DNA of 64,000 nt, from the NCBI GenBank assembly GCA_904063045.1, contig CAJFCJ010000013.1, forward strand, positions 1 to 64,000. The letters run 5' to 3'. The notes beneath the pieces were generated by a model that had not been told where the DNA came from, made no database searches, and saw only the letters and a program-made list of their open reading frames with translations. This document shows positions 9,128-47,632 of the stretch, piece after piece. Numbering within the stretch: position 1 is the first letter of the stretch; every line of letters begins with the position of its first letter. A program made the position numbers and the translations under genes. This DNA comes from Dimorphilus gyrociliatus. Lineage: Eukaryota > Animalia > Annelida.

Positions 9128-9644
9128 ATGTCGCTGTACATCGAGATGGATGTGGAATCTATGAACCACGCCCAGTTCATAAAGGAGCAATTTGGTATTA
9201 ATACTTTTTTAATAAATATACATATACAGAATTAAATAAAATTATATATAAAAATTTTAACAAAGTATCGCTTTTACCTTTCAAAAAGCTTTTGGGGCAG
9301 CTTTCGATAATGGAGTTCTAAATAGGGAATTTCCTATCTACGTATTAAACTACGGAAACAGATATTCTGTTGGTGCCGATGTTCAGCCTTGCCATGAGAG
9401 GATTCTCAGGAATATCTTTCGTCGACTTGTTGATAGATACAATCATTTTAATATTGAAGTTATTTTTAAAGTGCCAGAGAACTATTATAAAACCGTTTTA
9501 GACCTTACAACTTGGTTTCATAGATTTTTTGGTGTGAAAATATGCCTAGAAGATTCAGAAACTAGCGTTCAATTAGTTGGACCAGCTGATAATATTGATA
9601 CAATGATAAGTTTAATGAAAGAAGAAATATTTAAACGAAAATAA
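9128..9644 (+). CDS. Degenerate tandem-KH-like family member 1, exons 9128-9194 and 9289 (or 9301)-9644, ~140 aa; absent from the ORF track
   Basis: Exon 1 MSLYIEMDVESMNHAQFIKEQF + phase-1 intron. Exon 2 is open, and FRRLVDRY..FKVPENYYKTVLDLTTWFHRFFGVKI..VQLVGP..IDTMISLMK aligns by eye with the 20847 gene. Confidence 0.75.
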
Positions 9645-12600
9645 AGTATATACTGTACATAAAAAAGAATTTGGTCTTTTCCTTGTCTTTCTTTAAAATC
9701 TTCCATGTTCAAATATCAAAGTGTAAATTCAACTTATACAATCTATCTGTCGAAGAGAGAAATATCTAGCAGGATTTTTTATTCTTTCTTTTTTGTATCT
9801 TTTTCAATGTGAGATAATATTTAATTTCTAACTGCTTTTCCTTTCTAAGCAAAGTAATTCTAATGAATAGAAAAACAATTTATGGCAGTGTAACTTCAAT
9901 ATTTACAAAAAATAACTAGGTTAACGTATTTACTTACGACTAAATTCATTTGTAGAATTTAGAATTATTAAACTTATGAATTTACATATGCTGCCATCTT
10001 CTGGAGAGTGGTTATCAAATCTATTCGTTTTTCTTATTAATACAGGTTGATTAAAATTATATTTAATTGGATAAAATTGGACTGAATATGATTAATAGTA
10101 AAGTCATTGTTATATGTTCTTACTGGAAATTTCCAACAGCTTTTATTTTTAAAATGTACATATCTAACTTCCGGCAGAATAATTATCTTCTCTTCTTTAA
10201 TCAAATGCACAAGCTTTTTTATTTAATCAATTTTTAACTACTTGTACAATTATTACAAAATTTGTCTCTTAAGATAGTCCTTTTGCAGAGAAAAAGAAAA
10301 CTCTCCTTTTGATTGAAAGAAACTTCACTCACGTTTATGTTGGAATAACCTTTAAAGACAAAAGTAAGAATTATATAGTAGAACATAGAGTATATAAAAA
10401 GAAACGCAAAAAAAACTGAAAAGAAAGAGAGAAATAGGGATTAAGGGAAAAGAAATAAAATGTAAGTAAATTACGCAATGCATCGAAATAGTATCTTTTT
10501 TTGCCTTCCATTTCTAGATGGACAGTATAAATTCATTAAAAATAGCAAAAAGAAGGATTATAGATAATATATATATATATATATATATAATATAACACCG
10601 ATATACATAACTTATACACTATATATTTTTATCATTCATCGTTGCCTATTGTGATAAAAGCAACTTCCATGGTCGAAAAAACTTCATTCGCATTCAACTC
10701 GTATTCTTTTTTATAACCTATAAAAAGTAATTTTTCTAACGTTGGAATAGTAAGCACCTAAAAAGATACAGTGTAAAAAAAAACAATCACTCTCTTTTTT
10801 TCATCATTAGAATAAGGAGTCATCTTCTTTTTAATGCTAACAATCCCCCAAAAATACTGTAAATCAATACTAAAGGATACCTTACATTATTGTCGATTAT
10901 CATCTCATCCGATTACAACCTTAATGTTCGTTCACTTCCTAATTTCTATACTATCCTTCTCCAAACTCATGATTTGCAACAACAACAAAATAATATTAAC
11001 AAAATAGACAATACCACGTTTGTCGTTATATCGTTTAATTTACATAAATGATTTATATCTTTTGTTGTTTTCCAAAGTCTTTTTTGGCGAGTAAAGTATG
11101 TTTGTATAGTTCCTTTTGTTACCAGTATAAATATTCATATATGTAAGTATGCAAGAGCGTTTACCTGTTGAAAGTATACAATTAAAACAATGAGAGGTTA
11201 ATCGCTTTCTCTTTAATTTCAGGGCAATTAGGTAAAAAAAACAGAAAAAATAACCTACCTGAAATTTATCTGAAAGAGTACGATCATTTAAGCGTCATCA
11301 CTTTCCAGAAAGCGGAATTCGCTAATTATATCCCAGAGGTCAAAGGTATTTCAACTGTCGGCTCTAATAAATTTTAAGCGTAGACAAATGTCTAAGAAAT
11401 GAGCTCTTTAACTTGGAAAATTCTCTTATCTATCATTAGTTAAGATATATAACAGCACTATTTACCATTTTCGTTTTTCTGTTTAACTAACATGTCAAAA
11501 TAAAGAAGAATTTATAGAATTTTCCTCATTTTTCAAAATACAAAAATTACATTTATCTTCTTTACCCTTCTTTTAGCTATTCGTCATATTTATACCCTTA
11601 AAGCTCAAATAGCATTCGTCAGCCTCCTATTCGTACAACACATTTCAAACTGTCCAAATGAAAATGAGAAACCACTCCATGTTGTTATATCTTATTGAAT
11701 AACAACAGAGCAAATATCATTTGTCTCTAACGGAAATCAGTCCCTTTTATTCTATTTCAATAGACAATAAACGAAATACAAAAGTATTATATAAAGTCTC
11801 TTTATTTTAAGGAAAGGTAAAACGCTTTTATCTGCATTTAATCTGTCCATTTCGCCTAAATCCTACAACAGGGAAATTTTACAGTTTTCTTTTATTTTCT
11901 TTTATATTTTAAATATACTTTTTTAGTCAATTCTACAGCTTTCATTACAGTTTGAAATGCGATATATAATTATATTATTATTAATATAATACAACTGCAC
12001 TCTGCTTTTTTAAGTTGTCTAGTTATAATTTAATTTAAGGCTTTGAAAATTGAATATAATATAGGCTTTTACCTAAAAATAGAAAAATTATGCGTAGAAA
12101 TGAAAGATTCGACTGACGGATAGGACAAATCGATAAGAAATTCTCTTTCTTTTCCCATTTAAGGTTGCATAATTCTAGATTGAAGTTTATAGGTTTGATT
12201 TTAATATATGATAATGTAAGCTAAATCAGAAGGGACAAAAGCTTAATTAAATATCTGTAAAAAAAAAAACTCATTATATACTCCATGATTGTTTCCATTT
12301 TTCTTTTTGTATTTAGAAGCCTTTAAACTTTGAGAGATGGGAATAACAATGTTCAGTCTTCAATTATTGAAAAAAAAGATTGACCATTGTTATTCTAACT
12401 CACAAGTTATAAGCATTCTTTATATTCATTTTTCCTTTTTAAGAAAATTCTGAAAATAAACATTATTTCCTTTTATTTGAATGTATTAAGCTACATATAT
12501 AAGATTAAAAGTGAGGATGTTGGCTGGAAGGCGACAATTGAACTATCCGCCTCAAAACGTTCTATTTCGAGTTGTTCTTTTCTTTTGGAAAAAAACACAA

Positions 12601-14132: not shown

Positions 14133-14949
14133 ATGTCCAGCCATTCTATTGATTACATTCATTTAGATCTGAGTGACGAGGAGAACATGGTTAGTTGCAA
14201 AACAGTTGAAAAAGGACTTTTATTTATATTTTTCAACGAGTTAAATATGGCGGCAATCCCCGTCCGAAAATTTAAGTAACTTTTTTATTAAACCCAAGCC
14301 TATCTATTTTGCAGGAGCCCGAATTGATTCCCTTAGTAGAAATCAAAGTACCCAGTAATGAGCATGCTGATTACATCATGAGTAGATGGGGTAAATCAAA
14401 TGTTTCCATTATTTATTTTTTCATCCGGCCATATAACTTGAAATATCTATTTACCCATATCTCTCTTCCATAGTAACGCTATCTAATGAGGATCATGGGA
14501 CAGTCTACCGCAAGATTCACATAGAAATCGGAGAAAAGGGTGGAAAGTCAACGATCCGTTCAAAAATGGTGAACAAATATTCGAAACCGTGGTTCGTCCA
14601 TATTGTCCACTTTTTTGTTGACGAATACAACTTTATTGATGCAAAGGAGCTTGTCTATCCTATTGGAAAGTCTTTCTACAATTTAATCTGCATGTATACT
14701 GAATCGATGGAAAATGAGTTCAACGTTCGTATTGTAAAAAACAATCTCACCCAAAGCGACGTAACTATCAAGGGTAAGGACCAGAATATTTCAAATGCTT
14801 GCAGAAAAATCAACAATATTATCGAAGAGTATCTGAATATTCAAATTGATCTGGAGAAGGAGCGTATGAATCATCTGGAAGACATTCTTCGCGAAAGAAC
14901 CAGCGTGCTTTTTCAAGCAACTTTTGCTGTTGATGCTTTCTGCGATTGA
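14133..14949 (+). CDS. Degenerate tandem-KH-like family member 2, exons 14133-14189, 14315-14390, 14474-14949, 202 aa
   Basis: In-frame GT-AG splicing; VEIKVPSNEHADYIMSRW + phase-1 intron; C-terminal FNVRIV..DVTIKGKDQNISNACRKINNII. Confidence 0.75.
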
Positions 14950-15435
14950 AAGTTTAAATGCAAAGAGAAGATGATGATGATGACAATGATGATTATGATG
15001 ATGACGATAATGATGGTGATGGTAATCATATGAAGAATAAGGAATTTTAGTTCTAGAACTTTAGCTTTTGTAGTTTTTTCTATATGCATATCTACATTCG
15101 TATTCTATTCTATTTATATACAAGTATTTAACGTGTGCATATCTCTATGTATTCGTCTATTTAGTATTTATTATATCTTAGCTTCTATACTATCATTTGC
15201 TTAATAAACTATTTGTAACGTCTAAATGTATTAGCGTAATATAAGGTGTTGGTGCTCTTTGATGAAGCTATCATATTATACTACGTAATTTAAGAGTTTT
15301 TTTTTACATTCTCTTCTGACTTTAGTTCACTTCGAAACTAGTAACCAGTTGAAGAACAACATCTTTTTCATTTATCCTTTAGACGCTATCATTCTTTTTC
15401 CATCTTTTTCGTCAGCGGCTGAACGTCTAACGATT

Positions 15436-15934
15436 ATGAGTCAAGAAGTAATTGTGCCTTTATTATCGCTCGATCATGCCATTTTCTTAAAGGACCAAAT
15501 TGGTAAGAACTAAACTTATAGTTAAACATTTTTTCCTTCTAAAGACTTTACTCTGTAAATGGTTTATATACATTTTTGTTGTTTTAGGTACTTTTAAACC
15601 GACCGTTGAAGATGTTCATGTCGTCTCTCAAACTCTACAGATGAAATGCGAACAGGATCAAGTTTCTGAATTATATTCTTTTATTCGGGATAAGAATTCT
15701 GTTTACATAAACAATGGGCAGTTTAGACGGTATTACCGACTAATACCAAGTTGCATTGATAGAGTCGTCTCTAAATTAGGTATCATAGGAACTCTTTCCG
15801 GAGCAACGCTTACTGTAAATCAAACTGGCTTTCTTGATGTTGTCGGAACTTGGAAAGAGACTCAAGAAGCTATCTGGCTCTGTAATGAAGCGTCTATTAC
15901 AGGCATAAAAGAAATATGTTCCTATCGCGGATAA
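15436..15934 (+). CDS. Degenerate tandem-KH-like family member 3, exons 15436-15502 and 15588-15934, 137 aa
   Basis: VIVPLLSLDHAIFLKDQI + phase-1 intron; RLIPSCIDRVV..SGATLTV..FLDVVGTWKETQEAI. Confidence 0.72.
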
Positions 15935-17643
15935 GCTTGTAACGGCAAATCTGTTTTGTTTTGTTTGGTATTTGTATTTCTTTTAAAAGAAAAATCTGAA
16001 AATTCGTTAACATCTATTTTCAATCGAGTCAATAACAACAAAAAACTCCTTCTCATTGTACAATGTATCCTTGGAATTGTTTTATTACTATTGTTTGTAT
16101 TGTTTGTCTCTTCTTTTCCATACATGTTATACCTATGATCTAAACATTCCTACAGATAAAGAAAGTTGTTCGAAAAAATACTTTAATAATATATATAAAT
16201 ATATATATATACAGTATATATAAATATACTTTTATTTATACAGTATATATAAAGAGAAAGAGTAGAGACGCTTATGATTACCTGGAAGTAGGTGGGGAAT
16301 GACATATAAACATCCATCTCTCGCTCTCCCACTAATATATATGTATATGTTTGTAAATTAATTAAATATCAACATTTCCCATAACTAAGAAGATTAATTA
16401 AGCTTCGCTGGACGTCTAATAGTCTTAGAATACCTAATTAAAACTATACATTCACTATACAGTATATACAGTACAACCTCATTCATCAATTTTGTAAAAT
16501 GATACTGATAAGCGTAATTTTTTCCTCTACAGGCCAATTTTAAGCAATTTAAATCAATGTTATATAATAATTAATGTTTTAAATATATTTATAGATTATT
16601 AAATACTTTTTATTCTAAAAATAGACATTTATTTAAATAATTTATGCATGGATTTTCTACAGGTTTTTTTTTTTAATCGATGAAAGAAGTATACACAAAA
16701 AAATTACGTATTCCTTTACATAATTAAACCAAAATGTTCTATTTAAAATGGGAAAAAAATGCCAAACCGAAGCAAATTTTTTCTAGGCCTACTTTAGTAA
16801 ATTGATGTAAATAAGCAAAAAAAGAGAAGAAGTAAAAACTTCTAGTAAAAATTTCTAATGTTTGTTGTTATTATTTTTATTTATTCTTTACTTTCGGCAA
16901 AATAATTAAAGATTGTTTGTTTGTCTTTTTTTTGAACGTATTATAGTCAGAAATTGTAGTAGTTTGCAAAAACACAAAAAATAAGAATTATGGACAAACT
17001 GAACAGTTCAAACCAAACAAAAAAAATATTACACACAATATAGTTTGTCTCAAACTTTTTTGTTTTTGTTCGTTTATGTTACGTTTGACGTGTTAACTTT
17101 ATATTTAAACTTTTAAACGAAAAAAAAAATTTCATTAGAAAAAGGAGTAATTATTTTTTTTTTTTTATCATTTTGTTACATTTGGCAGACTAACTAACCA
17201 ATCAACTATTTTATTGTATTTTTTTCTTTCCTTCCTTCTTTGTTTAAAGAAGAATTCACTGCTTTTGTTCCTATTATTATTTCCTTTTTTTGGTCTTATT
17301 TTTCACACTCTCCTCACAAGTAGGCGTATGTTATACATGGATGAGTTCAGCCTGTGCACAAGACATTATAAATATTATACATATATATATATATATGTCT
17401 TGTGCATATATTCATACAACCCACATAAGTACAGCCATACCCACACAAAGCCAATGTCTCCATTCATTAACGAAAAAAAAAAGAAGGCATTCACCTCAGT
17501 TTCTGAATGTCGAATGCTGGCGAAGTGAGAGAGAGACTTGAGATCAAGATTCAAATAAAATTAAAAAAAAACGACTTGAGAGAAATGATTGAGTAACGTT
17601 TGTTTTTTTTCTCCCAACTTCTTAGGCAATAGATAAGACTTTA

Positions 17644-18192
17644 CTATAATAATTCTTTCTTAATTAATTCACGAATGGCGTCGACAGCTTGTACTACTCG
17701 ATGTTCTTGGCCTTTAACGCCTATTAGTGGCGATGTATATCTTCGTCTAATAATCAACTTAACCGAACATTTTAACTTGATTTCTTTAATCATTGGAAAC
17801 AATCTTTCAAAAATCTCTCTTGGAACTTGAACAACTTTACCAATTAATTCCGATTCATACATATCTATGGCCATTTTAATAACGGTACAGTACTGTTCAA
17901 GCTGATAGTATAGGACTTGGGCGTAGACAGTAAATTTGTCCCCCTCCATTCCCTGCCGAATATCAAATTCACGACTTAAGGTCCATGAGCCGATTTTCTT
18001 CCCCTGGGCTATCAACAAAATGTAAAACATCTTAATACAATTATCATATATTAAAATATAATGTATATAGTATATGTATTATATAGATCACTTACCGAAT
18101 TGATTCAGGAGAAAGTTGGCGTGGTCCTCTGTATCTACCTTAGCCGTGACCTTGAAAAAGAATACCGAGAAACCATTTTCAATATCAAGCAT
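17644..18192 (-). CDS. Degenerate tandem-KH-like family member 4, exons 18192-18096 and 18008-17644, 153 aa
   Basis: AKVDTEDHANFLLNQF + phase-1 intron (gtaagt); VVQVPREIFERLFPMIKEIKLKCSVKL..IGVKGQEHRVVQAVDAIRELI. Confidence 0.78.
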
Positions 18193-20846
18193 AGTGATGC
18201 AAGGACCTGTGGCAAAAAAGTGAATAAGACAAGACTTGTATAATAGATTTATATACTGTATACGTTTTAAATTATCCTATATCAATAGACTGGTATTAGT
18301 AATAAAAAAAAAAACCTAACTAAGCAATAGGGATTTAAAAAACTAACTTACCCAGTCAGTGAGATGAACTATTCTAATTAAATTTATGTAGTAATCTTCA
18401 CGCTTCTAATTATTCGAATCAATTCTACCAGACAGTACTGATACAGGTAGGTAAAATCTATCAGATTTCTTTCTTTTACTGTCAAGATGTCTAACGGGGA
18501 GCGAAAAGATTCTCTTTTTAACCCAAAAAAATGAACCAAAAACCAATACTTTCTTCTTATGTTGAAAGAAAAATATCGATGGAATTTTTACCAAAATAAT
18601 AGAAAATATTGCAGTGGCGTTTAAGAATAGTTCACCTCACAACTTCTCACCAACAACGGCACATAATCTTTCTGGTTCGATGTTGACAGCTTTTATACTA
18701 ATTGCGTTCAAGTGGATCATTTTTTTTTGTTTCTTTTTTAGAAGACGAGTAGATTCAAAAATATTTTCTGCGGGCGGGGCGGGGGTGTTTTTTTTTTGAA
18801 GTTCACCTACGCCCCCCTCCCTCCCTCCCTCCCCTCCTTTATAATTAGCTTTATTAAAGATATTAATATATATTTTATAATTGATTGAAAATCGTAACAA
18901 TTGTGCTTTACTAGTATCTTATTGCTTACCGTTAATGATTTTAATCTGGACTAAGCATTAAGGCTTTTTTTAGAGTAAAACTAGTTAATATTTTCATTTC
19001 CTTGCCCCCTTGTTTTTAATAATTTCCAGTTAAATCTGCCTTTGTAAAAAAAAAATAAGAAAAAAACGTCTAAAACGATCTCAGCAAAAACATGTTTTTC
19101 AATTTGGTGAGCATAATGTTTAAGTTATGATAACATCCCTTTAACATTATAATTGGACAAGTAAAGGTAAAACAAAAAATGTCCCTATTACTAAATTGAG
19201 TAAAAATAATAATAAAAAATTAACAGGTTGTTTATGCTATTTTAAAAATTCAAATGTCCTAAAAGAGTTTTGAGTTTTTTTTTAAAAAGAAAAAATAAAT
19301 ATTTAATAACTTTTTTTTTTTTTTAAATATAACAGAACAAACTTTTAACAAAAAAAAATATAACCTAATGGCCTATTGAATAAACGTGAAGGTTATATCT
19401 CTAAAGTTACATTTGTCAAACTTTTCAATTCTAATTTTATGCGTTTGCTCCATATAAAAAAAAAATAATGAATGGAAGATAAAGAAGAACAAAAAGATTT
19501 AAAGATGTTACTAGAAGTAGAAAATTAATAGAAACAGTAATAATAACGAATATAAATAATCGTTTTGAAAATTAGACAAATTGTAAATACATTAATATAA
19601 TGTCTGGTATGAATATTTAAAAACTAACAAATGATAATGATAATGATAATGAGATGATGATATATATTTTAGAATAAATTACGTTCCTTTTGTTAAAAAG
19701 ATTGATATTGAAAAAAAAAAAAACTAGCCGACCTCTGGCATCTTCTGTCATAATGTTTTTTAAGTGTAAATAATACATTAAATCAGCGTATTAATAAATG
19801 ATCTTGCTCCTATTCTTCTTTTCCATTTATTTTAGTCTTGAAAAAACCCGTAATTCTATCTTCCACCTTAATACATAGTCTGTGCCAGAAGTTTTACATA
19901 CAATGGTTGAAATAAAACCTTCGTATCTCTCTTCTTTTTAACGGAGAAGTTTTATCAAGCATACAGACTTAGCGGTAAATACAGTACATACTGTGTATAA
20001 TATATATATATACTGTATATATTCGTATTATTTCAAACATGAACATTTTTCCAAGATTGTGTTGAACATTTAGGGAAGCGCCATCTTTGAGATAAAAATT
20101 CTTTATCAGGGAAAAAAAAAGGACCGATTTGTAAATCTTTCCTATTTGCGTGTTGAATAATCTGTTATCGCCCATATCGTATACATTTGGAAGATAAAGC
20201 TGAATAAGCAATAATATAATAATAAAAAAACATAAAAGAATAAAGTTATCCGTATAATTAAGTTCGTAATCGTACTAGATTATTTAGCCTACTACACATA
20301 AGCGAGAGGAACATTTTGTATCCATTTAAAAAAAAGCCTAGCCGGAAATATACTACATGCATATAATCTATCTAGAATAATATCAGTTAATCTGTTAAAA
20401 ATGAATATTGAGGTTGAAGAATTAAAGTAGAAACGTAAAAAATGTATATACTTTATACTTTATATATACTAATATATATGTAGAGAGAGAGAGATAGATG
20501 GATAGATAAAAGTGTGTATATGTATGTGTGTATACGTACAAACACTTCTTGACTAATCGTTTGTACTTCGATCGAATTCGTACAGGCCAAATCGAATTTT
20601 ACTACTTTGGATTTGTTTCATTTAGGTTATTTTCAACCTTAATATTGCGCGTAACGGATAATCTTGTACGTTTTTATTCCTTCATTTATTTCTTATTTTT
20701 ACTTATTTACTATTATATTCTATTTTTTCTCTCTTTCTTTCTTTCTATAATTATTTCTCTATCTTTCTCTCTCTCTCTCTCTCTTTCTTATTAATTTCCA
20801 TTTTTCATTTTCATTTTTTCAAGGAGATTAACCGATCAAAGATTGA

Positions 20847-21373
20847 ATGATGCTGAAATGCGTTAGAATATCTATTCCTTCTACGGAACACGCTAGCTAT
20901 ATCCAAAAAATATTGGGTAATGATTATTAATTTGTCTTTCCTTATTTTCTCTTTTATTATCATTATTATTATTATTATCTATTTATCTATCTCTTTCATT
21001 TTTTAATTATTCCCTTTTAGGAGAGGGTATCAATTTGAGTGGTGTGACGACTTGCGGAGTTTACAAGTCGTATATAGGATATTTTAAGAATGAGCTTTCC
21101 CTTTTTTCGTACGTTGATGAGGAGATTGAAGATATTTTCAGGTCAACTGTTCATAGGCTAGTAGCCAAGTTTGACGAACGTAATATTGAATATGTTGGTA
21201 ATATACCATCTTCGCACATCACTACCGTTTTGGATGTTTGCTTATGGTTCACTAAATACGGAGTAAAATTTTCCCCAATGCCGGATATGGACAAGCTATA
21301 CATTGAAGGGCCAGAGGAGATTGTTCAAATTTTGAATTCCATAATAAAACGTGGAATTGTTGGCGAAGATTAG
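20847..21373 (+). CDS. Degenerate tandem-KH-like family member 5, exons 20847-20916 and 21021-21373, 140 aa
   Basis: VRISIPSTEHASYIQKIL + phase-1 intron; GNIPSSHITTVLDVCLWFTKYGVKF..LYIEGPEEIVQILNSII. Confidence 0.78.
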
Positions 21374-22026
21374 GTAGTTGACAAACGGAAAAGAGTTAAA
21401 AAGAGCCATATTTTTTTCACATTTATTTACATAATCCTATATAGTCTGCGTACCTGTGTATCGTCATAATAGCCTAATTATCTGCCTGACGACTTTGAAT
21501 TATTATTCTTTCATGATAATAATACACGTTATCGTTCATTATGATTAAATGCTTGAAAAAAAGTTTCTTAGAATGTTTTTTCCCGTAAAATCTTCCAATG
21601 ATGTTTTCGGAATCATGACGATATTGCAACCCCAAGCGCCCCCTATCGATTCATCTTCGATAAGCTTGTTTGTTCGAACCAGTAAAAAGAGGACGAAAAC
21701 GTCAAAAGTCATAAACATGCTCATCGCTTTTTAAGTTGGATACGTGGAGGAAAGCGTTATTTGTGGTCATTATTAAAAAATTGATGATAGGCTAAAGAGG
21801 CAGTTGTTTTAGACCAATTAGGTCTATGAACAACTCTAATAAATAGCGGGCGAGGAACGTTCATCGTCACTCTACCCAACAGTGTGGTTTAGTCATCTAC
21901 TAAATAACACTGATAGACTCGTAGAAGACTGGTTGGGCATTCCGAATATCCGAATTATAAAACTCTTATTATTCGTTCGATTTGCGGTTGTTTGGTCAGA
22001 AGTTGATCTTTTTTTTCTATTTTAAT

Positions 22027-22489
22027 ATGGAAGCTAGTTGGGTTAAAGGAGGAGAGACGTTCGGAGATGGTTGCTACGACTGGGAGACGTACGAATTATT
22101 GGTTAGCGAATTGCTTAAAGTGAAGGATGTTTCTTTTCCTCTGTTTTGTTTGTTCCATCGTCATTACCAAAGGGGTAAGGAAATACTTAACGATTTGGCT
22201 AAAGATTACGCAGTCTGGTCGGCTAAGAACCATAGGACCAACAAGTTAAAGATTCAAGATCTCCATTTAAAGATATCCCGTGCCCAAGCTGATGTTTTGT
22301 TTATGATACGACGTAGAATTAGATATGCTAAGAAAAATATGGTAAGTTTCATAATTACGTAAACAATTTGTTATGTTTAATCTAATTTTTATTTTTGTTA
22401 AAACACAGCGAATGTACGAAACTATGTACCAGAGTGGATTCTATACTGAATTCAAAAGACCGGAGAAGAAAACTAGCGAAGACGCCTAA
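22027..22489 (+). CDS. Orphan helical protein, possibly Occludin/ELL-like domain, exons 22027-22341 and 22409-22489, 131 aa
   Basis: Open frame with elevated GC and a phase-0 gtaagt..cag intron; by-eye similarity to the ELL C-terminal domain. Confidence 0.6.
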
Positions 22490-23307
22490 AAGGCTCTTGC
22501 TTATTCTTGCCGCTCTCTCTCTCTCTATCTCTCTATATATATATCTCTCTACAAATAACAGATTTTATATCTCTTTTTGTTGAGTTTTGTCTTATTAGTA
22601 TATGTAGTTTTTGACTTTTGGAAAGATATATATTTATTTGCTTTTTAGAGGGATCATTTTTTTCGTGAAGTTATATTTATTTTTTGCTACGTCGTATTAT
22701 AAACATTACAAAAAGCAATTATAAACTTATATATATATATATAAGAGGTTTAATTTGGTTAAGCAATGCAAAAGTATTTTTTTTTGTGGAAGACTTTTAT
22801 GTAATGCGAACTGTAAAAAAAAAAAACAAAAAACAAAAAACAAAAAAAAAACACCATTGTTCTTTTTTTTTTTTTTCTTGTGTGAAATATATATATATAT
22901 ATATAATAAAAAGTTCTAAGGAGAGGACTAAATAATGCTAATAATCTAGTCTTTATTTTCTTAAACAAAGTCCAGTTTTTTTAGGAAATATTGCGCATTT
23001 TGTTTGTTTGTTTTGTTTGCTAATAATTATTATGGGGGTATCTGCAACCAGACGGCGACATAGTTAGATGACCTTGACACGCTGTTTACATTTTGCCCCC
23101 AGGACAAGGTTGTAATTGGTTAGCTGATGGCTTTTAGTGAGTGCACTACTCAATCTCATTTTACCAGATAGACAACGTGGTGTTCAAGTATAGGTAAGTT
23201 TTATAATATAACTTATTACTTTATTATAATTTAGATAGAAAAAATAGGCTATTCTTTTAAAGACTTTAAAACTTATCTTTCCGTTCAGTTTTCTTTTTAG
23301 TTCAACA

Positions 23308-24354
23308 ATGAATACTGTAAATTTCATTCCAACTCCATACATTCCCGAAAAGAGTCGCATTGTTTGTCAGGTCGTTTACGAAAGTTGTGCAGATTATATT
23401 ATTCGCAAATTCGGTAAGTGTTTTTTTTTCCATAAGCCTAAGGTAAAATTTAATAGGCCAATTTTCTATTGCGTCTGCATGCACACGTGCGCATGTTCGT
23501 ACGTAAAGCGCCTTGTTAAAAATTAACTATAATGTATATTATTTTTATGGACACTAGACGAAGAAGTAATTGTCGAAGGAGTCCAGTTAAGTCGAACAAT
23601 GCCCATTGAAAAAATTAAAAAGGGGACTGATAATATTCATGTTATTCTTTATTTGCGACAAGAAGCTATTCCTACATATCAGAATGTTTTATTGACCTTG
23701 ATGACAGACTTTAATAAATGTATTGTTACCCGTGCTCTTATTACAAAAAAGAGCATTATGGGAATCGTCCATCCAAAGTTTGAAAAAGTTATGCTGAAAT
23801 ACAAAGTGATGTTCGATGTTAGACGATATACAACTCATTATCGCATTGAAATAAAAGGAGCCAGAGGAAAGGTGCGTACGGCAATTAGATATCTTGTTGG
23901 ACTTGCAGAAGCCTGTTGCATTAAGACGAAGAACGTTATGGTCCCTGAACCAGTACCTGGCGAGCCAGCTATGAATATTGAAAATGACACGCTATCTGAT
24001 CTAGACGAGTCCGAGAAGGAGGATATCAGGAAAGGTATTGAAAATAACCCGCGAACGAAACTTGCAGAAATGGAATTGAAAGCTCAAAGGAAATATCTGT
24101 TGAAATTAAAACTTGAAGAAATGAAACAGCGAAAAGCAATTGCTCGGTTCCGAGGACAACGAATCAAGAGATTACGAAGAAAGTGTTATTTTAAAGGAAA
24201 AAGGAACATTCCAAAACCATTGACCAAAGTTGACAGTGAAGCTGACAATGAAGCCGACGATGAAGCTGAAGATGATGATGAAGATGTTCATGAAATTATA
24301 GTTATTTCCGATGATGAAGACCAGGAAGTAGTTGAAGTTTTTAGTTCCGACTAA
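23308..24354 (+). CDS. Degenerate tandem-KH-like family member 6 with basic + acidic/SIM-like tail, exons 23308-23413 and 23558-24354, 300 aa
   Basis: VYESCADYIIRKF + phase-1 intron (gtaagt); YKVMFDV..RIEIKGARGKVRTAIRYL; tail RIKRLRRK..EIIVISDDED. Confidence 0.78.
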
Positions 24355-25460: not shown

Positions 25461-26498
25461 ATGTTGAATTTACATTTAAGGATATTAGATAGTTTTTTAG
25501 CTATTTGTGTATTCTTTCCATTTACGATATTCTATTGGCGTGGAATATGGGATATATTAGGATACTATTTGCTAAGAAGCAATAAGGTTCGCGGAATATG
25601 GATATTGGTTGGAGTTGGATTAAGCTTAACCTATTCTCTATATTTTATCTTCGCCTATTTTATTGATAAAAGGTTAACTTTAGTATCACAAAAATGGCTT
25701 AAAATACTTATTACTAGATTGAGTTTAGTCGTTTACGGATTTCTCTACATATCTGTATGGAGGGGTTTTTGGGAATTGTATAATCACTACATCGGCACAA
25801 GTGTAAAGGAAGGTGTTATTTCTTTTCTATCGAGCATTCTAGTTCTTAGTTTGCTAAAATGTACACGAACTTTAATGTGGCCGCCCATGAATATCGCTGT
25901 TGACCTTAGAGAAGATGTTATTCGGCCTTGCTGTAGGTTTGCTACAAACCCAAAAAATAGAATAAAATTTATGTTTGACGCATTTTTCACGCAAATATTT
26001 ATTCAACCTTTAGCGATTTTTTGCTGGAGATCAGGATTCAACATACTCGATAATACAATATACAAATCAGATAAATTCAAATCGGATATTGTATCTCTAA
26101 TAGTAGGCTTTTCAGGATGTTCATTCCTTCTACTGTGCCAGTATCCTCTATCTAGAATTTCCATCAGACTAGAGGGCAATAGATTATTAAAGATAATTTA
26201 CGAAGATATCGTTCACATAATCGCATTTGTTCCACTTTTGTTTCTCTATCGAGGTCTGTGGAATTTGAATGAGGAGTACATGATCAAAGACAAAAAAATT
26301 GGGGGCTGGGTCAATCACAGCATTGGCTTAACAATGCTGCTTATTTTACAGATCTATAGCACTTTAGTTGGGCCAGGGTGTATTGTAGATGGTCAAGAAT
26401 CGGATGGAAGGGCCATTTTTTCGATTCGCTACACAAGAGCATTTGAAGACTTGAAGGTAAATATTACAAAAAATTTGGGTAGCTTTGTTTTTATGTAA
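25461..26498 (+). CDS. fusl: Fuseless-like multi-pass membrane protein (~345 aa; the C-terminus may be spliced at the GT near 26457)
   Basis: LDSFLAICVFFP..FYWRGIW, VWRGFW, FCWRSGF, LYRGLWNL: the repeated WRG.W motifs of the Fuseless family in an internally duplicated transmembrane architecture. Confidence 0.8.
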   Translation: MLNLHLRILDSFLAICVFFPFTIFYWRGIWDILGYYLLRSNKVRGIWILVGVGLSLTYSLYFIFAYFIDKRLTLVSQKWLKILITRLSLVVYGFLYISVWRGFWELYNHYIGTSVKEGVISFLSSILVLSLLKCTRTLMWPPMNIAVDLREDVIRPCCRFATNPKNRIKFMFDAFFTQIFIQPLAIFCWRSGFNILDNTIYKSDKFKSDIVSLIVGFSGCSFLLLCQYPLSRISIRLEGNRLLKIIYEDIVHIIAFVPLLFLYRGLWNLNEEYMIKDKKIGGWVNHSIGLTMLLILQIYSTLVGPGCIVDGQESDGRAIFSIRYTRAFEDLKVNITKNLGSFVFM

Positions 26499-30566: not shown

Positions 30567-31114
30567 TTAATCTTCGACGCGATCAGTTCGATTAGCTTTC
30601 ATATCCTGATTGATCAAAGTTCGAATATAGTTAGCAGCTTTTTGAGTTTGATCCTTCTCGCCCTCTATATAAAATTTATTGTCTTTCATCAAATCAAATG
30701 GTGTTACTTGAACTGCATACTTCTTCTCGACCAAGACGAGATTATCCAAAACAAACTTGAAGTAGTTCATTGGAACGTAAATAAGCTTATTACCGCCTTC
30801 CAGTTCTCGAAAGCGTTTAACTATTTCTATTATTTGATTCTTAAATTTTTGTAATTCTCCCATATCTAATTCGGCCGCTATCGCGTATCGCCCATCCAAA
30901 AGTACTTTAAACAAGTCAACTTGAATGCTCAGGCCTAAATCGCTAACCCAACTACCATCGCCTAAAATGAAGTTGTATCAGTATTAATATGTAGCTTTTT
31001 TGCTGAAGTTAGCATATTTTACTTACTAGTTTGTTCCAATATGAAGTCAACAATCTCCTCCAATGGAAACACAATATAAATCATCGGTTTCGAAATGATA
31101 ATTCGAAGATCCAT
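30567..31114 (-). CDS. Degenerate tandem-KH-like family member 7, exons 31114-31027 and 30961-30567, 160 aa
   Basis: IYIVFPLEEIVDFILEQT + phase-1 intron (gtaagt); LIYVPMNYFKFVLDNLVLVEKKYAVQV..FYIEGEKDQTQKAANYIRTLI. Confidence 0.78.
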
Positions 31115-31890: not shown

Positions 31891-32953
31891 TTAAATTTCC
31901 AAATTTTCCGAGACCTTATCTTCTTCTGTTACGTCTTCTGGGAGCCACTCTGGCTTGCCACATAGGGGGTGGTCTTTGTTCCGTTCCATCATCTTTATCA
32001 ACGAAATATAGTTAGTGGAACTGTGGGATTTGATATTATAACAAAAAATTTCCTTACCAGGTGAGTCAATCAGTGCAAGTACTAAACCGACAAGACAAGA
32101 ATAATATGAGCCTATGATTAGTTTATGATTTATGGTAGCAGGGCTGATAAATTTATAAAAGTTGAAGAAAAAGTCGCATATTATGCAAAAAAGACTCGTA
32201 ATGCATATAAGAAAATTGCTCCATTTCCATTTATGATTGAAATCACGAAAACTAATGCCAGCTTTGAAGAGGACTGCCCCAATTAGAGAACAATAGATCA
32301 CTCCAATGGATATAATTTTTGTCTGTTGATTAAACGAAAGGTCTTTTCTTTAGCAATAAATACGTACCCGTTACAATAACCTAACCTTAACAAGGGGATA
32401 AAAAGTTATGAATATCGCCGAAAAGATCATTATGCCACTGAGAGAATTTTTCCATCCTCGACTTTTATAAATGAGGGCCTTACTAAAACTGCAGAAAGAC
32501 ACCCCAAAAAGAAACATACCAAAAACAATACCGTTGATATTATTCAAATCGTAGCACGATTCCCCTACAACAGTACATAAGATGCCTTGTAAAATACATT
32601 TAGTATAACAGTAGCTGTCCATGTAGTTGATTTTCTTCGCTGGTAAAATGAGGGCTAGAATGCAAATTGGAATTACATTCAATTTTCCAGGAAGTATGCT
32701 TTTGAACTGTTCACTTTTGGCAGTCGTGAAAATGAAGTAGATAGTCATAACTTTAAAAAGAGGAGACATGCCGAACTCAGATAATCTTTGAACCTAAAAA
32801 GTATTAAAAACAGTTTCATCAAAATTTTAAAAGAAGTTTTTGGTCGCGAGCGTTATTTATCAGAATTTGGAAATTTCCAAAGAATAATTCTAAAAAACAA
32901 CTGAATAAACTCACTGGAGCTGGCCGTCTTCGAATACTTCGTACTCTTGGCAT
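31891..32953 (-). CDS. Highly divergent TMEM86/YhhN paralog (copy C), exons 32953-32915, 32793-32386, 32322-31891, 292 aa
   Basis: Same two phase-0 intron positions as copies A and B. SPLFKVMTIYFIF ~ VPFFKTVTIYFVL; GILCTVVGES ~ GLLFSAFGDA; FCIICD ~ FFVISD; HKLIIGSYY..LALIDS ~ HQLIMSTYY..LSVIDS. Confidence 0.8.
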
Positions 32954-33852: not shown

Positions 33853-33883
<31 letters not shown>

Positions 33884-33960
33884 TGTATAATACTAATATA
33901 TATACTGTACATACTGTATATATACATACTGTATATATACATACTGTATATATACATACT
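33853..33960. repeat. (TA)n followed by a 15-bp tandem repeat ATACTGTATATATAC x~3.3 (33911-33960)
   Basis: Read directly. Confidence 0.9.
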
Positions 33961-36762: not shown

Positions 36763-37334
36763 ATGGCTTATGTAAGAAGAAGAATGCATTACACTGAACA
36801 AAGATATACTACAAATGAGGAAATAGAAGCTGCCTACGTGGCTGACCATTGGCACAGCGACCCCGGAAAATTTGGTAATTAATTTATAATTTAAGAAAAA
36901 TTTAAAATATGTCTCTTTCTATATATGAATTTATCAACGTTCCACATTAAAATGTTTTAGGATTTGCGGTTATTAGCGATCGGCTTCGTCAAATGGAGGT
37001 TTACAACGACTGCAATCTTGTTATTGGTGAAGTTCCAGAAGATCTGATTGAGGCTTTTTACGTTTATGCTGATAGACTGAAGATGCATTTCTCATTTTAT
37101 CAAACGATTACGGTCTACTGCGTGCCACAAGGAACGTTGCCGTTTGTTATGAGAGAAGAACCAGCTATAAGGCAATTTCTCAATGTTTCAATTGAAGTTG
37201 TCAATCCCTGTGTTTTCAGTCGCGTTTTATTACGGGGAACTTTACGTAATATTAAAAAATCGATCGCTCATATCGAAATTATACTATTTCAAGTTTGGAA
37301 ATCAAAGAGCATTTATCCAAATTTCTTCATCTAG
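36763..37334 (+). CDS. Degenerate tandem-KH-like family member 8, exons 36763-36874 and 36961-37334, 161 aa
   Basis: Phase-1 intron after exon 1; YCVPQGTLPFVM..LNVSI..RVLLRGTLRNIKKSIAHIEIIL is clearly paralogous to the 47632 gene (YYLPMGTLDAVM..FHVSI..RVILFGHKHNIKKAISHIEGII). Confidence 0.78.
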
Positions 37335-37636: not shown

Positions 37637-38548
37637 ATGGAAGAAAATTTTGACCTATTAAACAGACAGATTAAAGTTAATTTCAATTTGCTTCAACAGG
37701 TGTCTCAGCATGTAGTTTTTGAAATGTACTCAAGAAAGCTTTAAAAGAAGAGCCGATTTTGCTGCAATTTACTTCTGCTGTTGGAATGGCCGGGTAAGTA
37801 CTAGTAAAATTTTTTTATATTATAAATAGTAATTTTATATTCTTAATTTTCAACTTCTTTTCTCCAACCAGACCAATCCAGAATATTCCAGATAGCAAAA
37901 CAACAACTGTTTAGTTTGAGCATGCTTGCCCCCACAGTTCGTCTCAGCCAATATAACTACAATTTCCTGACGGTTTAGGCAAAATTCCTTCGTTTTATAG
38001 GTAAGTTGTGTTTCGTTGAATGTTTTTGCATACTAATGTATTTACTTTTTGTTTATTTTTTTCCCCTTTTAGACGTAGTCTTACATCAAACTCTGAGTGA
38101 GTATTGTTAATTTTTCACTATTCATATTTGTTTACTAATGGTATATTAATTTCTTTATTACAGGCACAAACCTTCCGATTAACACTACTGTATAAATCGT
38201 AAAATTATCAACTGAAACAATGACTAGCGGCAGACTCCAACATTCTGTTAAATATTCGTTTTGCAGGTATGTAGTTTCAACATAGAAAAAGAGATTGTAC
38301 TTTTTATACGTCTACTTTGAATTATTCTAGTTTACCTGACGGACTGGAGTGAACGAAAGTGTGGTTGGACAAGAGGGCAAAATTAAAGAGTTGCTGTTTT
38401 ATACATTATCTGGCATAATGTAAGATAATTTTTCGCATGTTAAAACTGTTTTTAACATGTTTTATTGTTTAAAATTAGGAAAAGATGCTATCGTAAGTGA
38501 ATGGGACGGGGAAGAGTCTTCCTCGGAAGAGATTTCAGCAGACTGACG
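37637..38548 (+). pseudogene. Six-exon spliced unit with no intact ORF (pseudogene or lncRNA)
   Basis: Donors at 37794, 38001, 38097, 38267 and 38420, each paired with a polypyrimidine acceptor. One frame carried through all junctions contains six internal stops. Confidence 0.45.
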
Positions 38549-39336
38549 CATAGATATTTTAAGGTTGTAAAAAATATAAGAGATTTTTTTTAAAACTTCA
38601 TTATATTTTGTTTTCTGCGTACAGAAATTAATTTTTATCAACTATGAATAATTACCGAAAAACTAGCACGAATATTCAAACATGACAAGCAAATATACAA
38701 CGAGACGGTTAAGAAATAGTTTTTAATTATGTGTATCTATGCGTTTCTTATGATAAAAATTTTTTAAACAAGTTTCACTTGATCTGTGGCGTTTAATTTT
38801 TTTAAATGGTTGTGAATGTTTGTGTTGAGAAATTTTAAAATTATCATTTACTTGACTTTTAATTAAAAAACGCCGCATAAAAACGTAATTTCGTTTTTTT
38901 AATTTTTAATACAAGAAAAAAAAACAAACAAATTCGTTTTTATCATTATCATTAGACAGGTTGAGGGCAATCGGCTAGTTTTTCATACGAATCATACATA
39001 TAATTAGTTAAAGATAGATGAAAAGACTCGATTAAACACTTACGTTTTTTATTTCTTCGACTCTTTGTACTTGAGGGAAAAAATTGGCAGGTTGCAATGG
39101 TGATAGACGGCTTTTACTCTGAATCTGTACCTTATTAATATTCATATGACGGCGTCTACCAATCGTCGTCGATGTTGGGTGTCAACGTCGCTTTTATCTT
39201 ATTTCATTTCGCAGAATAAATACGTTCGAGGAGGACAATCAGTCGACAGTAAGTCATTTTACGTGTTTCCTTAAATGCGTATCTGCTTGCGTTATTCTTA
39301 CGAAAGCGTCCACCTTGCATTAGATTTGAAGACATC

Positions 39337-43130: not shown

Positions 43131-43587
43131 ATTTTTTTTCTCTATAATAGAGTTAAAATTCCCTCTAGCTATAGTTATCCATTTTAGTAGATATTTAAAC
43201 AATTTATCGTAGCCATCTCAAGGTAACTAAAGCTTTTTTTGCACTCGAAAGTAACAGTTTCTTCCTTTGATCCTCCCTCACACTTTTTTTTCGTTTACAT
43301 CTTTAATCAATTTATATAGTGCAAACACTCAAATAATCTACTGTATATCAAAAGCAATGCTGTATAAAGTGTTTTCGATTACCTTAGTAAAATGTTTATT
43401 AGGTAAACTTTTAGAATACTAATACTTTAATTTACTCTAATGACAACAGTAAAATTATAATAAAAAGACTAAAGTTTACTTTAAAAGACTACTAAGTTTA
43501 TCTAAAGACGAAAATACAAAAATAGAGAAACCGAATTTTTTAATGAGTGATATATTTGAACATCGGGATCCCTGATAAGTAGAACAA

Positions 43588-44517: not shown

Positions 44518-46358
44518 TTTGCAAATTTATCTTTATTAAAAGCAGTATGAATTGAGTTTTCGATAGCGAAATCCTTTCTATTCCTGATATTGAATAAGAA
44601 TGCTATTAAATGTAATAATTAAAGCGCCAGATGTATAAAGCTCTGCGATTGGTAGAAGCAAGCGACTTATTAATATTCATAAAGTAGACGACTAAGCTAA
44701 TTGAAAATAGTTACTAATTTGTAGCCTTGGCAACAAGCCTCTGCTTTGTGTTAGAAGCAAAGATTTCATATATTATATAGTGTTAAATTTAGTTTAGTGC
44801 TCTTTCTAGTGTAGTTTTTCTGAGAATCATAATGTAAATATTGCCAAAAAGAGCATACACGATAGTTTGGTCAAAGCTTAAAATGGAAAGTCTCAAACAG
44901 AACAGGTGTCGATTATTGCTTGGACGTTAATAGGATTAACTGGTACAACTAATCGATCATTTTATCTTCAATATGTTCACATTAGAAGAATACTTCTGGC
45001 AGATATTGCAGAATAGCTTTCCCATATTTTTTTGACTTTGGGTAGTACTGTCATTTAAAGAAAAAAACAATAGAAACGTAAATGGTTGGGACCATCTAAA
45101 ATAAGAAAGTAAAAAAAAAAATATCTAATATAAAGTATATCTAACATTTTTAATTCTATATAAACAATTATTTTATAATGAAATAAAATCACGTTGGGAG
45201 ATAACTCAATTTCTATGTACAGTTGATATGTTTTAGTTAAAAGAAACACTTAAAAAATTTTAATTTAAATATACAGAGTAATGTTTAGTCTGTTCGGCAA
45301 TAGTAGTTAATGTATATTTATTGCTTAAGATATTTGATGCTACTCAACGAATTAAGTATATGTTATGAATAAAGATCAAATTGTTTTCAATATTATAGTT
45401 GTTCTATGAATAAAGAAATAAATTCATAATAAAATTAACATGCTGTATAAATTATATAGTATATTGAATGTACGAATTCACTATATAAAGCTACATAGCC
45501 TTTAAACCTAACTGAATATTTTATCTATGATGGCGTTCGGATTCTATTCGTAGACAGAAATTCTTGCTTTGATTCTAAAATTCCCCTGTGGGAGTGACTT
45601 TCCACCTCTTTAGCCTTTTCATAACAATCAAAAAAAGTTAAAAAGTTGTGGTGAAAATAAACAAAATTTTACGCCTGAGTATCTGGATATAGAAGTATCG
45701 AAATCTTTCTCCTTGAAGTTACCTTTATAACCTACTCCTTCTTTTAAGATTTTAAACGTTTATTTATTATTTTTAAAAATTAAAATAAAAACAATAAGCA
45801 AGATAGAAATAAAAATTAATTTTAAAAAAAATTTTTAAATAATGGACGTTATATTTTTTTGTTGTCCCACACTTTTGCTTAAACTTTTCTTATTATCCTA
45901 TTTTGTGTTGTTTTAGATGTTCTAAAGATACTTGGAATGTATTATATTGTGTATAAAGTATATGCCATTTATTACCTGCATCATAAAAGAATCTACTAAA
46001 TAAAAATATATTTACCTACTCTACAAAATCTAGAGATATCCAAAACCTAAATGAGCATTGATAGTCGTAGAATCAAAGCCAACTAATACGAAATACAAGA
46101 TCTTTTTTAATAGCAAAAGAGTTTATTTAGAATAATAAGAAAAGTATCACAGGAAATAATTATCAAAGCATTGTTTAAATGAGAAATATTTAATTAAATA
46201 ATTGAAAGATTTATGCCAACCCCATTCTGAAATTAAGTAATTAATATGTTCATTAAACGCAAAACATTTGAAGAAAAACGGTTATAGCCTGTTAGATTGT
46301 AATTTTCAATTCAATTCCACCATTAAGTTCCACGAGAAAATCCAAAGTTGAGAATTTC

Positions 46359-47632
46359 CTACTTGCGATGTTGATATTGACGTTGAACACGCTGTTGTTG
46401 TTTTATTTGTGGTTGCTGTTTTTGCTGTTGTTGTATTTGCGGTTGCTGTTGCTGTTGTTGAAGGTGCAATTGCGATTGCGGATGAGCTATACAAAATTGT
46501 TGCTGATGCAAAAATTGATGATGCTGATGCCATTGGACTTGTTGAATTTGCATCGCCTGAAGTTGTTGCGGTTGTAGCTGAATTTGTGGATATTGCTGTG
46601 GTTGTAGCTGACCTTGTTGAATTTGTTGCATTTGCTGTTGTTGCATTTGCTGTTGCTGCATTTGCTGTTGTTGCATTTGCTGTTGTTGCATTTGCTGTTG
46701 CTGCATTTGCTGTTGTTGAATTTGCTGTTGTTGCAATTTCTGCTGTTGCAGTTGAATGTGTTGCTGTTTTATTTGTTCACGCTGTTGCTGCTGATGCTGT
46801 AACTGCTGACGATATTGCTGTTGTTGTTGCAGCAGCTGACGTAACAATTGCTGTTGCTCTTGCAGTTGCAAGCGTTGCTTCTCTTGTTGATCCTGTTCAG
46901 ATTGTTGTGGCTGTTGCTGTTGCTGATTTCCCTGTTGGTTTTGCTTTAATTGTTGTAAACGCTGTTCATATTGTTGTTGTTGCTGCAATTGGCGTATTTC
47001 AAGCTTATTTTGATATAGATATTGGTGCTGGTTTGCATAGCTAAATCTGATCTTGTTGTTCTTTTTCCTCAGAAGTTCGCAAATGATTCCTTCAATATGA
47101 GAGATTGCTTTTTTAATGTTGTGTTTGTGTCCAAATAGAATTACTCGATTAGAATTTAGCATATGAGCCAATCTTATCGATACATGAAACTTATAGTTTA
47201 TATAAGTGACGTCTGACATAACAGCATCTAGCGTACCCATTGGCAGATAATAAGTTGTTTCGATTCTCTCGTCGGCAAAACATAGAACCAAATGTTGTAT
47301 GTACTGTTCAAATTCAGGTATCAAAAATCTTGGACAGTAGCCACCAATCCAAACCAGTCCATGAGCTTGGTAAGTAGATATTTTCATACTTCGTAAAGCT
47401 TCTAGAACTTCGAATGGTAAATCTTCGGCTGAAATTCATTAAATAGTACTACGAAGAATAAAATATTTAGTTACGTTTACTTACGATAACTTGTATAAGG
47501 AACAGACCATGCGAAGTGACAATAATCGGCATAGTCTAGAGTAGGAACGGGAACACGATGAAATCTGAACCAATCATTTCGCTTAAGTTTAGTAATACTT
47601 CCATCGGGTTCTATGTACCAAAAATATTCCAT
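46359..47632 (-). CDS. Degenerate tandem-KH-like family member 9 with a long polyQ C-terminus, exons 47632-47485 and 47428-46359, 405 aa
   Basis: RVPVPTLDYADYC..+ phase-1 intron (gtaagt); KH-like core paralogous to the 36763 gene; ~230-aa Q-rich tail. Confidence 0.8.
46620..46740 (-). repeat. Coding 15-bp tandem repeat (MQQQQ units) inside the polyQ tract
   Basis: Repeated TTTGCTGTTGTTGCA-type units on the plus strand. Confidence 0.9.

Follow-up and report, generated by a model that had tools for sequence, protein, structure and literature searches.

Introduction

KH domains are usually taken as RNA binders, and among the small proteins that contain two of them are the ribosome-assembly factors Krr1 and Pno1/Dim2, in which KH1 is without the GxxG loop and serves protein binding. 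According to the literature, KH domains without GxxG lack the canonical mode of nucleic-acid binding; the GxxG-less di-KH unit of N4BP1 binds protein, not RNA (PMC13586276), and in KHNYN, KH1 has an elongated alpha-1 helix in place of GxxG and the di-KH unit is a protein-interaction module (bioRxiv 10.1101/2021.12.22.473955). Here we analyse the first 64,000 nucleotides (nt) of scaffold CAJFCJ010000013.1 of Dimorphilus gyrociliatus (assembly GCA_904063045.1; this whole stretch is called the window), in which a cluster of nine genes for KH-like proteins occupies 38.5 kb at the start of the scaffold. The species is a miniature marine annelid. The gene family is a lineage-restricted new branch of a well-known fold, without the functional hallmark of that fold. 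We consider it likely that the genes form a lineage-restricted family of paralogues with two degenerate type I KH modules that have no GxxG clamp, and that the products, by analogy, would act most probably as protein-interaction adaptors.

The worm proteins can be set beside several described systems. Canonical tandem type I KH proteins (vigilin/HDLBP, MEX3, Nova-1 KH1-KH2, IMP1 KH3-KH4, KSRP and FUBP1) have the same module fold and a similar two-module arrangement; the similarity is detectable with profiles, and the V/I-P and x-G signatures are kept in the worm family. The worm proteins are, however, stand-alone units of 140-160 amino acids and not parts of long multi-domain proteins, and most of their cores are acidic. 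N4BP1, KHNYN and NYNRIN likewise have a type I KH pair with a degenerate or missing GxxG, which is a shared property and not proof of kinship. Their extended di-KH unit is the best functional analogy for the worm family, but the worm proteins are without the C-terminal three-helix extension, the NYN/PIN nuclease and the CUBAN domain, and end 0-20 residues past module 2 or continue into low-complexity tails. PARP14, DTX3L and RBM43, too, have tandem KH-like modules that are GxxG-less, whereas RRM, macro, WWE, PARP and RING-DTC domains are absent from the worm proteins. The eutherian KHDC1/DPPA5/KHDC3L (FILIA)/OOEP genes also are clustered and lineage-restricted and encode small atypical-KH proteins, but these have a single atypical KH with extensions where the worm proteins have two modules. 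Krr1 and Pno1/Dim2 likewise have two KH modules; in contrast to the worm family, their genes are single-copy and conserved throughout eukaryotes, and their KH2 is canonical.

Nine clustered genes with a phase-1 intron

We rebuilt the gene models, g1 to g9, from the splice-site context in the AT-rich window (GC content 0.24-0.34), where introns are short and of the GT..AG type. All nine start positions proposed in an earlier note on this DNA turned out to be ATG codons. The short 5' coding exon of each gene ends one base into a codon at a donor of the form x/GTAAGT, GTAAT or the like, and the acceptors consist of a pyrimidine-rich stretch followed by AG, weaker in g1 (CAAAAAG). The intron between them, which the note had described as phase 1 in all nine, is a GT..AG intron of 56-144 nt in every case, lies directly 3' of the sequence coding for the first helix, and its removal keeps the frame open to the stop codon (9/9). 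It falls at one alignment column in g1-g7 and 6-8 residues deeper into the loop in g8 and g9. An additional upstream exon is present in g2, set off by a phase-0 intron of 125 nt. The motifs quoted for exon 1 and the last-exon pattern (V/I-P, helix, strand, x-G, amphipathic helix) were found as quoted. The products are small intracellular proteins with a core of 137-161 amino acids and tails in three members; the full products are of 137-161 amino acids except those of g2 (202), g6 (300, with a charged tail) and g9 (405, with a glutamine-rich tail). The genes are as follows.

9128-9644, plus strand: g1 (DgyrCDS9224), 140 amino acids; exons 9128-9194 and 9289-9644; phase-1 intron of 94 nt.
14133-14949, plus strand: g2, 202 amino acids; exons 14133-14189, 14315-14390 and 14474-14949; phase-0 intron of 125 nt and phase-1 intron of 83 nt.
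15436-15934, plus strand: g3 (within DgyrCDS9226), 137 amino acids; exons 15436-15502 and 15588-15934; phase-1 intron of 85 nt; the outlier of the family.
17644-18192, minus strand: g4 (DgyrCDS9227), 153 amino acids; coding exons 18192-18096 and 18008-17644; phase-1 intron of 87 nt.
18352-18635, minus strand: non-coding 5' exon of g4, joined over the intron 18207-18351; from an X1 RNA contig (see below).
20847-21373, plus strand: g5, 140 amino acids; exons 20847-20916 and 21021-21373; phase-1 intron of 104 nt.
23308-24354, plus strand: g6 (DgyrCDS9231), 300 amino acids; exons 23308-23413 and 23558-24354; phase-1 intron of 144 nt.
30567-31114, minus strand: g7 (DgyrCDS9234), 160 amino acids; exons 31114-31027 and 30961-30567; phase-1 intron of 65 nt.
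36763-37334, plus strand: g8 (DgyrCDS9235), 161 amino acids; exons 36763-36874 and 36961-37334; phase-1 intron of 86 nt.
46359-47632, minus strand: g9, 405 amino acids; exons 47632-47485 and 47428-46359; phase-1 intron of 56 nt; di-KH-like core and a glutamine-rich tail of ~220 amino acids.

Two relatives served for comparison: relative 1, represented by genomic contigs of runs SRR23372228/29/31, and relative 2, a third lineage represented by a contig of SRR31837527 with g4. The exon structure is the same in a related species for g1, g2, g3, g4, g8 and g9. The g3 orthologue has the same phase-1 intron, with stops just upstream of the ATG; for g8 in the relative, a read-through open reading frame (ORF; P0156) stops just beyond the same donor; and relative 2 has a contiguous g4 ORF (P0175/L009), which we read as a spliced transcript and which keeps the junction.

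Transcription and splicing

The genes are real, spliced and transcribed. RNA evidence came from run X1, a mixed sample whose contigs behave as a transcriptome and the sole mixed transcriptome run compared with the region. Of the junctions proposed in the note, X1 contigs confirmed those of g4, where exactly 18009-18095 is skipped, and of g5, where 20917-21020 is skipped with its GT..AG ends, while for g6 they reached only the donor (the contig ends at 23412/13). The word depth was ~260 for the g4 contig and ~1,600 for the g5 contig. In the 5' untranslated region (UTR) of g4, the X1 contig is joined at 18204/18350 (the joint fits equally at +2), which corresponds to the intron 18207-18351 with CT..AC ends, and the spliced UTR has an in-frame stop upstream of the ATG at 18192.

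GenBank annotation agrees with many of the models: DgyrCDS9224, 9227, 9234 and 9235 are identical to g1, g4, g7 and g8, DgyrCDS9231 agrees with g6 in length, and DgyrCDS9226 holds the g3 junction. Look-ups of the exact products of g1, g7 and g8 returned the GenBank genome record only and no transcript contigs. In the supplements of PMC7854359 and PMC9977687, which were searched for stage or tissue expression, neither identifiers of the cluster genes nor 'Dgyr' prefixes were present.

Three further observations concern the transcripts. DgyrCDS9226 adds to g3 an acidic N-terminal exon (MQREDDDDD...; window 14959-15435, plus strand), which starts ~10 nt past the g2 stop; this exon is probably an annotation artefact or species-specific, as the relative has stops directly upstream of the g3 ATG. 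One X1 RNA contig (21020-22652, plus strand) spans exon 2 of g5 and its stop and extends into the neighbouring gene, whose ORF lies at 21982-22362 and whose intron lies at 22341-22407, and for which Pfam gave no match; the contig could reflect overlapping UTRs or read-through transcription between the neighbours. The same intron of the neighbouring gene is present in a contig of run X6, a coral metatranscriptome. This run contains near-identical D. gyrociliatus transcripts over 17640-22505 (0-2 mismatches per contig); the coral sample or aquarium therefore contained the worm itself or a very closely related strain.

Coherence of the family and the position of g3

The paralogues share only 9-30% pairwise identity, and the strongest BLASTP links are those of g8-g9 (54 bits, g8 being the closest paralogue of g9), g1-g5 (53 bits), g1-g4 (38 bits) and g1-g2 (32 bits), followed by g1-g7 (30 bits), g7-g9 (28.5 bits), g5-g7 (28 bits) and g4-g6 (25 bits). 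In a leave-one-out analysis, we searched all 1,437 six-frame ORFs of the window with a hidden Markov model (HMM) built from eight members. Among the matches outside the training set, the left-out last exon ranked first for eight of the nine genes, with E-values of 6.5e-15 (g1), 1.3e-13 (g7), 1.2e-12 (g9), 7.8e-10 (g2), 1.1e-9 (g4), 2e-7 (g6), 6.3e-7 (g5) and 1.3e-6 (g8). The proposal that all nine belong to one family thus holds by sequence for eight, but not for g3: its leave-one-out E-value was 22, and hhalign aligned only a 17-residue N-terminal motif at a probability of 1%, so that membership by sequence was rejected. What ties g3 to the others is its position in the cluster, the two-exon structure with a phase-1 intron after the same helix, the N-terminal motif and the predicted fold. 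The nearest structural neighbours of its ESM Atlas model are tandem-KH proteins, with template-modelling scores (TM) of 0.52-0.55 over 110-121 residues.

At least one pseudogene had also been claimed. Neither a pseudogene nor a tenth copy was found in the window with the family HMM on the six-frame ORFs or with tblastn at word size 2, all off-locus matches having E>0.5. The best candidate for a pseudogene or extra copy (38465-38641, minus strand) has none of the family features.

Sequence and structure place the products in the KH superfamily

A family profile made from all nine last exons, when scored against 1.84 billion representative proteins, gave 151 matches at E<=1e-3. The top eleven small proteins matched were the family or its orthologues, and the remaining matches were nearly all long multi-KH proteins with 3-9 matched stretches each, down to E 2e-15. 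Pfam KH_1 was present in 17 of 18 non-family matches scanned, many of them vigilin-like arrays of 5-14 domains; the one exception was a SEA-domain protein matched by the module-1 region alone. Several profile alignments cover both modules, for example positions 20-120 on P0017. The g2 orthologue of the relative (P0013) reached 22.0 bits for KH_1, against a gathering score of 21.5. Against PDB sequences, the family profile gave only sub-threshold KH matches (E 0.06-0.9). The V/I-P that ends beta-1 and the x-G that ends beta-prime are retained and match KH sequence signatures, and the structural glycine of x-G is the sole invariant column of the family alignment. As the note had suggested, the family is lineage-restricted by sequence: family-level matches among the 1.84 billion representatives were D. 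gyrociliatus genes and orthologues of close relatives only, and a homologue search with the family alignment returned family members only.

The structural models gave a similar picture. AlphaFold2 modelled the last exon of g1 with a predicted local distance difference test score (pLDDT) of 81 and full-length g1, from a 19-row alignment, with a pLDDT of 80 and a predicted TM (pTM) of 0.56. The model consists of two beta-alpha-beta-beta-alpha modules with KH topology, each with a three-stranded sheet packed on helices: module 1 has strands at residues 3-9, 39-43 and 48-54 and helices at 12-23 and 56-75, and module 2 has strands at 78-83, 106-109 and 115-120 and helices at 86-103 and 122-139. With VIA-align, module 2 superposed on solved KH domains at Z 8-9.5 and a root-mean-square deviation (rmsd) of 1.2-2.0 Å over 59-66 of ~65 residues; these include KSRP KH3, human PNPase, Nova-1, IMP1, MEX-3C, vigilin KH13 and FMRP. 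Module 1 alone reached a TM of 0.73 to a KH_1 protein. The whole g1 model aligned to tandem KH pairs of the ESM Atlas over 125-131 of 140 residues (TM by query 0.61-0.66), and its Foldseek matches in the AlphaFold DB include the MEX3, vigilin, TDRKH and DTX3L pairs. Profile matches to KH_1 proteins, AlphaFold, Foldseek, VIA-align and the ESM Atlas thus agree on single or tandem KH, which bears out the proposal that the products are tandem type-I-KH-like proteins; their place in the KH superfamily is supported by fold and profile. An internal tandem duplication of the modules was not supported by sequence (hhalign probability of 0.2-0.3% for module 1 against module 2).

Foldseek also matched the g1 model end-to-end with DgyrCDS14239 (UniProt A0A7I8WD30), a protein of 138 amino acids encoded elsewhere in the genome (E 5e-5, 17% identity), and it also retrieved T1FG92, a KH protein of 169 amino acids from the leech Helobdella. 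Judging from the models, both may be distant members that were missed by the sequence searches.

Resemblance to individual atypical KH systems was more limited. For the PARP14/DTX3L type it is weak, sub-threshold and structural only: a PARP14 cluster was a Foldseek match at E 7e-4, residues 409-513 of mouse DTX3L aligned to 108 residues of the g1 model (rmsd 4.2 Å, TM 0.56), and KH_PARP14_8 was the Pfam family that matched most members, yet only 3 of 19 family sequences, with a best E of 0.021 and ~15 bits against a cut-off of 27. The KH_N4BP1 Pfam models gave a single weak match in the same 19 sequences (KH_N4BP1_2nd, E 0.15 in one orthologue), and there is no evidence of common descent with N4BP1 beyond the KH superfamily. 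Module 2 matched chain 9xrl_AH of the mouse oocyte cytoplasmic-lattice structure (Z 7.2), while MOEP19 (PF16005) had no match at E<=1 in the 19 family sequences, nor in the last-exon ORFs; any resemblance to the KHDC1/OOEP cluster would be convergent. Chains of pre-ribosome structures matched module 2 at Z 7.1-7.7, of which 4qmf and 9g25 are titled Krr1 and the others are presumably of the Krr1/Pno1 type, and the family profile did not retrieve Krr1 or Pno1 by sequence. The worm family falls outside the MOEP19 (KHDC1/OOEP), N4BP1/KHNYN and PARP14/DTX3L families. Taken by analogy, the worm family looks most like ordinary KH pairs and most likely works like the di-KH unit of N4BP1 and KHNYN.

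Loss of the GxxG loop and a probable adaptor role

The note had described the family as GxxG-less. This stands for g1, g2 and g4-g9, in which neither module has GxxG at the helix-helix junction, but g3 has GIIG there, inside a helical segment and lacking the basic residues that usually go with it. At the junction of alpha-1 and alpha-2, module 2 reads, for example, ENYYKTVLDLTTWFHRFFG, and in the model the two helices form a single DSSP helix of ~18 residues; module 1 has a shorter helix and then a loop in place of GxxG. G-x-x-G strings elsewhere in the proteins fall in beta hairpins, save those of g5 (C-terminal helix) and g8 (loop at the splice junction). The isoelectric point (pI) of the core is 4.9-6.0 in g1, g2, g3, g5 and g7, 7.0 in g8 and 8.3-9.6 in g4, g6 and g9.

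Some members carry appendages of their own. The pattern of a SUMO-interaction motif (SIM) is a hydrophobic core beside acidic or serine residues, and we take IHLDLSDEENM at the N-terminus of g2 and IIVISDDED in the tail of g6 to be candidates for such motifs. The g2 motif is identical in the relative, where the preceding residues differ. In g6 the motif lies in an acidic tail that follows a basic stretch, and the orthologue, barely alignable in the KH region, still ends in six aspartates and then EVIVIS. The tail of ~220 glutamine-rich residues in g9 is absent from the ORF of the orthologue, which stops soon after the KH core; by comparison of the two sequences, the tail may be a recent expansion. 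It is encoded at 46359-47020 (minus strand) and contains a run of (QQQQM)n repeats, and the opposite strand has long spurious ORFs.

In the mechanism that we propose, the canonical RNA clamp would have been lost by replacement of GxxG in both modules. Because the clamp is gone and five cores are acidic, the KH-like modules are most likely surfaces for protein-protein interaction or oligomerisation, as in other GxxG-less KH domains, and not canonical binders of single-stranded RNA. Paralogue-specific appendages, namely the SIM-like motifs of g2 and g6 and the polyglutamine (polyQ) tail of g9, could take the scaffold to different partners. A whole expressed and conserved cluster with the clamp lost in both modules would be a clean natural case of reuse of the KH fold, and the retention of a nine-gene expansion points to a lineage-specific need.

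Several points weigh against this interpretation. The adaptor role rests on analogy and on the loss of one motif, the cores of g4, g6 and g9 are basic, and nucleic-acid binding persists in some atypical KH domains. The SIM-like motifs were recognised by their pattern only. Every D. gyrociliatus member is below all Pfam thresholds, with best matches to KH_1, KH_BICC1 and KH_PARP14_8 at E 0.01-0.05; because of this, an HMM from the family alignment would annotate genes that are at present nameless. AlphaFold modelling was confined to g1. For g8 the ESM model is poor (pLDDT 0.52), although KH_1 is carried by all ten of its neighbour families, and g3 is linked only by gene structure and an ESM model of medium confidence. 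Secretin_N, Pcc1 and MscS domains match module 1 nearly as well as the KH_1 protein does, and hhalign found no sequence similarity between modules 1 and 2; therefore the KH assignment of module 1 is at the fold level only.

It is rather unlikely, but worth keeping in mind, that the proteins are still nucleic-acid binders, either through a non-canonical surface or by means of g4, g6 and g9, the members with basic cores, perhaps in hetero-oligomers where the acidic members would regulate them. The proteins share the fold and ancestry of RNA-binding KH domains, and three cores are basic; in addition, the atypical KH of FILIA/KHDC3 and the KH-like region of DTX3L reportedly bind nucleic acids. The absence of the GxxG loop from both modules and the acidity of five of the nine cores argue in the opposite direction, and no basic surface residue is conserved family-wide, only the structural glycine being invariant.

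A more specific and clearly improbable version of the adaptor interpretation is that the nine paralogues make up a hetero-oligomeric, non-RNA-binding scaffold specific to dinophilid annelids, which might be a germline or early-embryo lattice or condensate or, by way of the g2/g6 SIM-like motifs and the g9 polyQ tail, a SUMO-dependent nuclear body. If it were true, the worm cluster would parallel the eutherian KHDC3L/OOEP cluster as an invertebrate counterpart that arose by convergence, and clustered degenerate KH modules would be recurrent raw material for lineage-specific cellular scaffolds.

The KH likeness itself could be convergent, the modules being generic beta-alpha-beta-beta-alpha domains of the ring-building or ferredoxin-like kind that are unrelated to KH by descent, but we regard this as very unlikely. 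Secretin N-domains, Pcc1, engineered ferredoxin folds and ACT-like domains do occur among the fold matches, and Foldseek E-values against the PDB are only 0.007-0.1; the best structural matches, at an rmsd of 1.2-2.0 Å, are nevertheless all true KH domains. DSSP gives one helix where KH has two, whereas V/I-P and x-G agree with the KH signatures, the profile matches are specific (KH_1 in 17/18) and the g2 orthologue exceeds the curated KH_1 cut-off.

The nine genes are conserved and under purifying selection

Relative 1 has orthologues of all nine genes, with the order g4, g5, next gene, g6, Fuseless, g7, g8, g9 kept and g1 and g2 on a separate contig; the g7 orthologue is syntenic and adjoins Fuseless. 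With orthologues present in these lineages, all nine duplications predate the splits. Orthologue identity is 95% for g8, 91% for g3, 82% for g1, 74% for g5, 64% for g4, 62% for g2, 58% for g9, 53-59% for g7 and about 20-50% for g6. For comparison, the neighbouring Fuseless gene has 73% orthologue identity and a nonsynonymous divergence (dN) of 0.167.

Because synonymous sites are saturated between D. gyrociliatus and relative 1 (proportion of synonymous differences, pS, 0.66-0.95, and 0.40 for g1), only dN and the proportion of nonsynonymous differences (pN) are comparable for this pair. Across the genes dN ranges from 0.03 (g8) to 0.48, and pN is far below pS in every gene. The sole unsaturated pair, g4 of relative 1 against relative 2, gave a dN of 0.065 and a synonymous divergence (dS) of 0.91, a dN/dS of ~0.07. 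The family had been called rapidly diversifying. This is apt for the distance between paralogues (9-30% identity) and for the very uneven orthologue rates, but the low pN throughout and the dN/dS of g4 are those of purifying selection. By these sequence comparisons, the family is old relative to these species and maintained by purifying selection, with very uneven rates; positive selection was not demonstrated. The spread of rates within one family, from 95% to about 20-50% orthologue identity, offers a compact system for the diversification of degenerate KH surfaces. The idea that the nine sets of ORFs are annotation noise or decaying relics without function, to which the short proteins, the lack of any Pfam domain above threshold and the occurrence in only three close lineages might lend some colour, is effectively refuted by spliced transcripts at high word depth, frames intact in three lineages with synteny kept, and the constraint on protein sequence.

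Neighbouring genes and other features of the window

Three paralogues of a TMEM86/YhhN-type membrane protein lie at 5190-5992 (plus strand), 31891-32769 (minus strand) and 50007-50826 (minus strand). In this order they lie upstream of g1, g7 and g9, and each shares its strand with its KH-like gene. The pairing is also found in the relative (L005, L008), and copies 1 and 3 share 70% DNA identity in the coding region only. On the sequence pattern, the pairing may go back to a segmental duplication that copied two genes as a unit. The Fuseless homologue lies at 25461-26498, between g6 and g7 (Pfam E 3e-51), and ORF fragments with EF-hand and calponin-homology domains at 56707-60494 (plus strand), downstream of the cluster, look like parts of a plastin/fimbrin gene. 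At 19240-20040 the depth of the DNA runs spikes ~ten-fold and loose ends are numerous, both signs of a dispersed repeat, and at 19335-19447 one X7 contig has 13 clustered G>A changes relative to the window, a one-directional mutation pattern.

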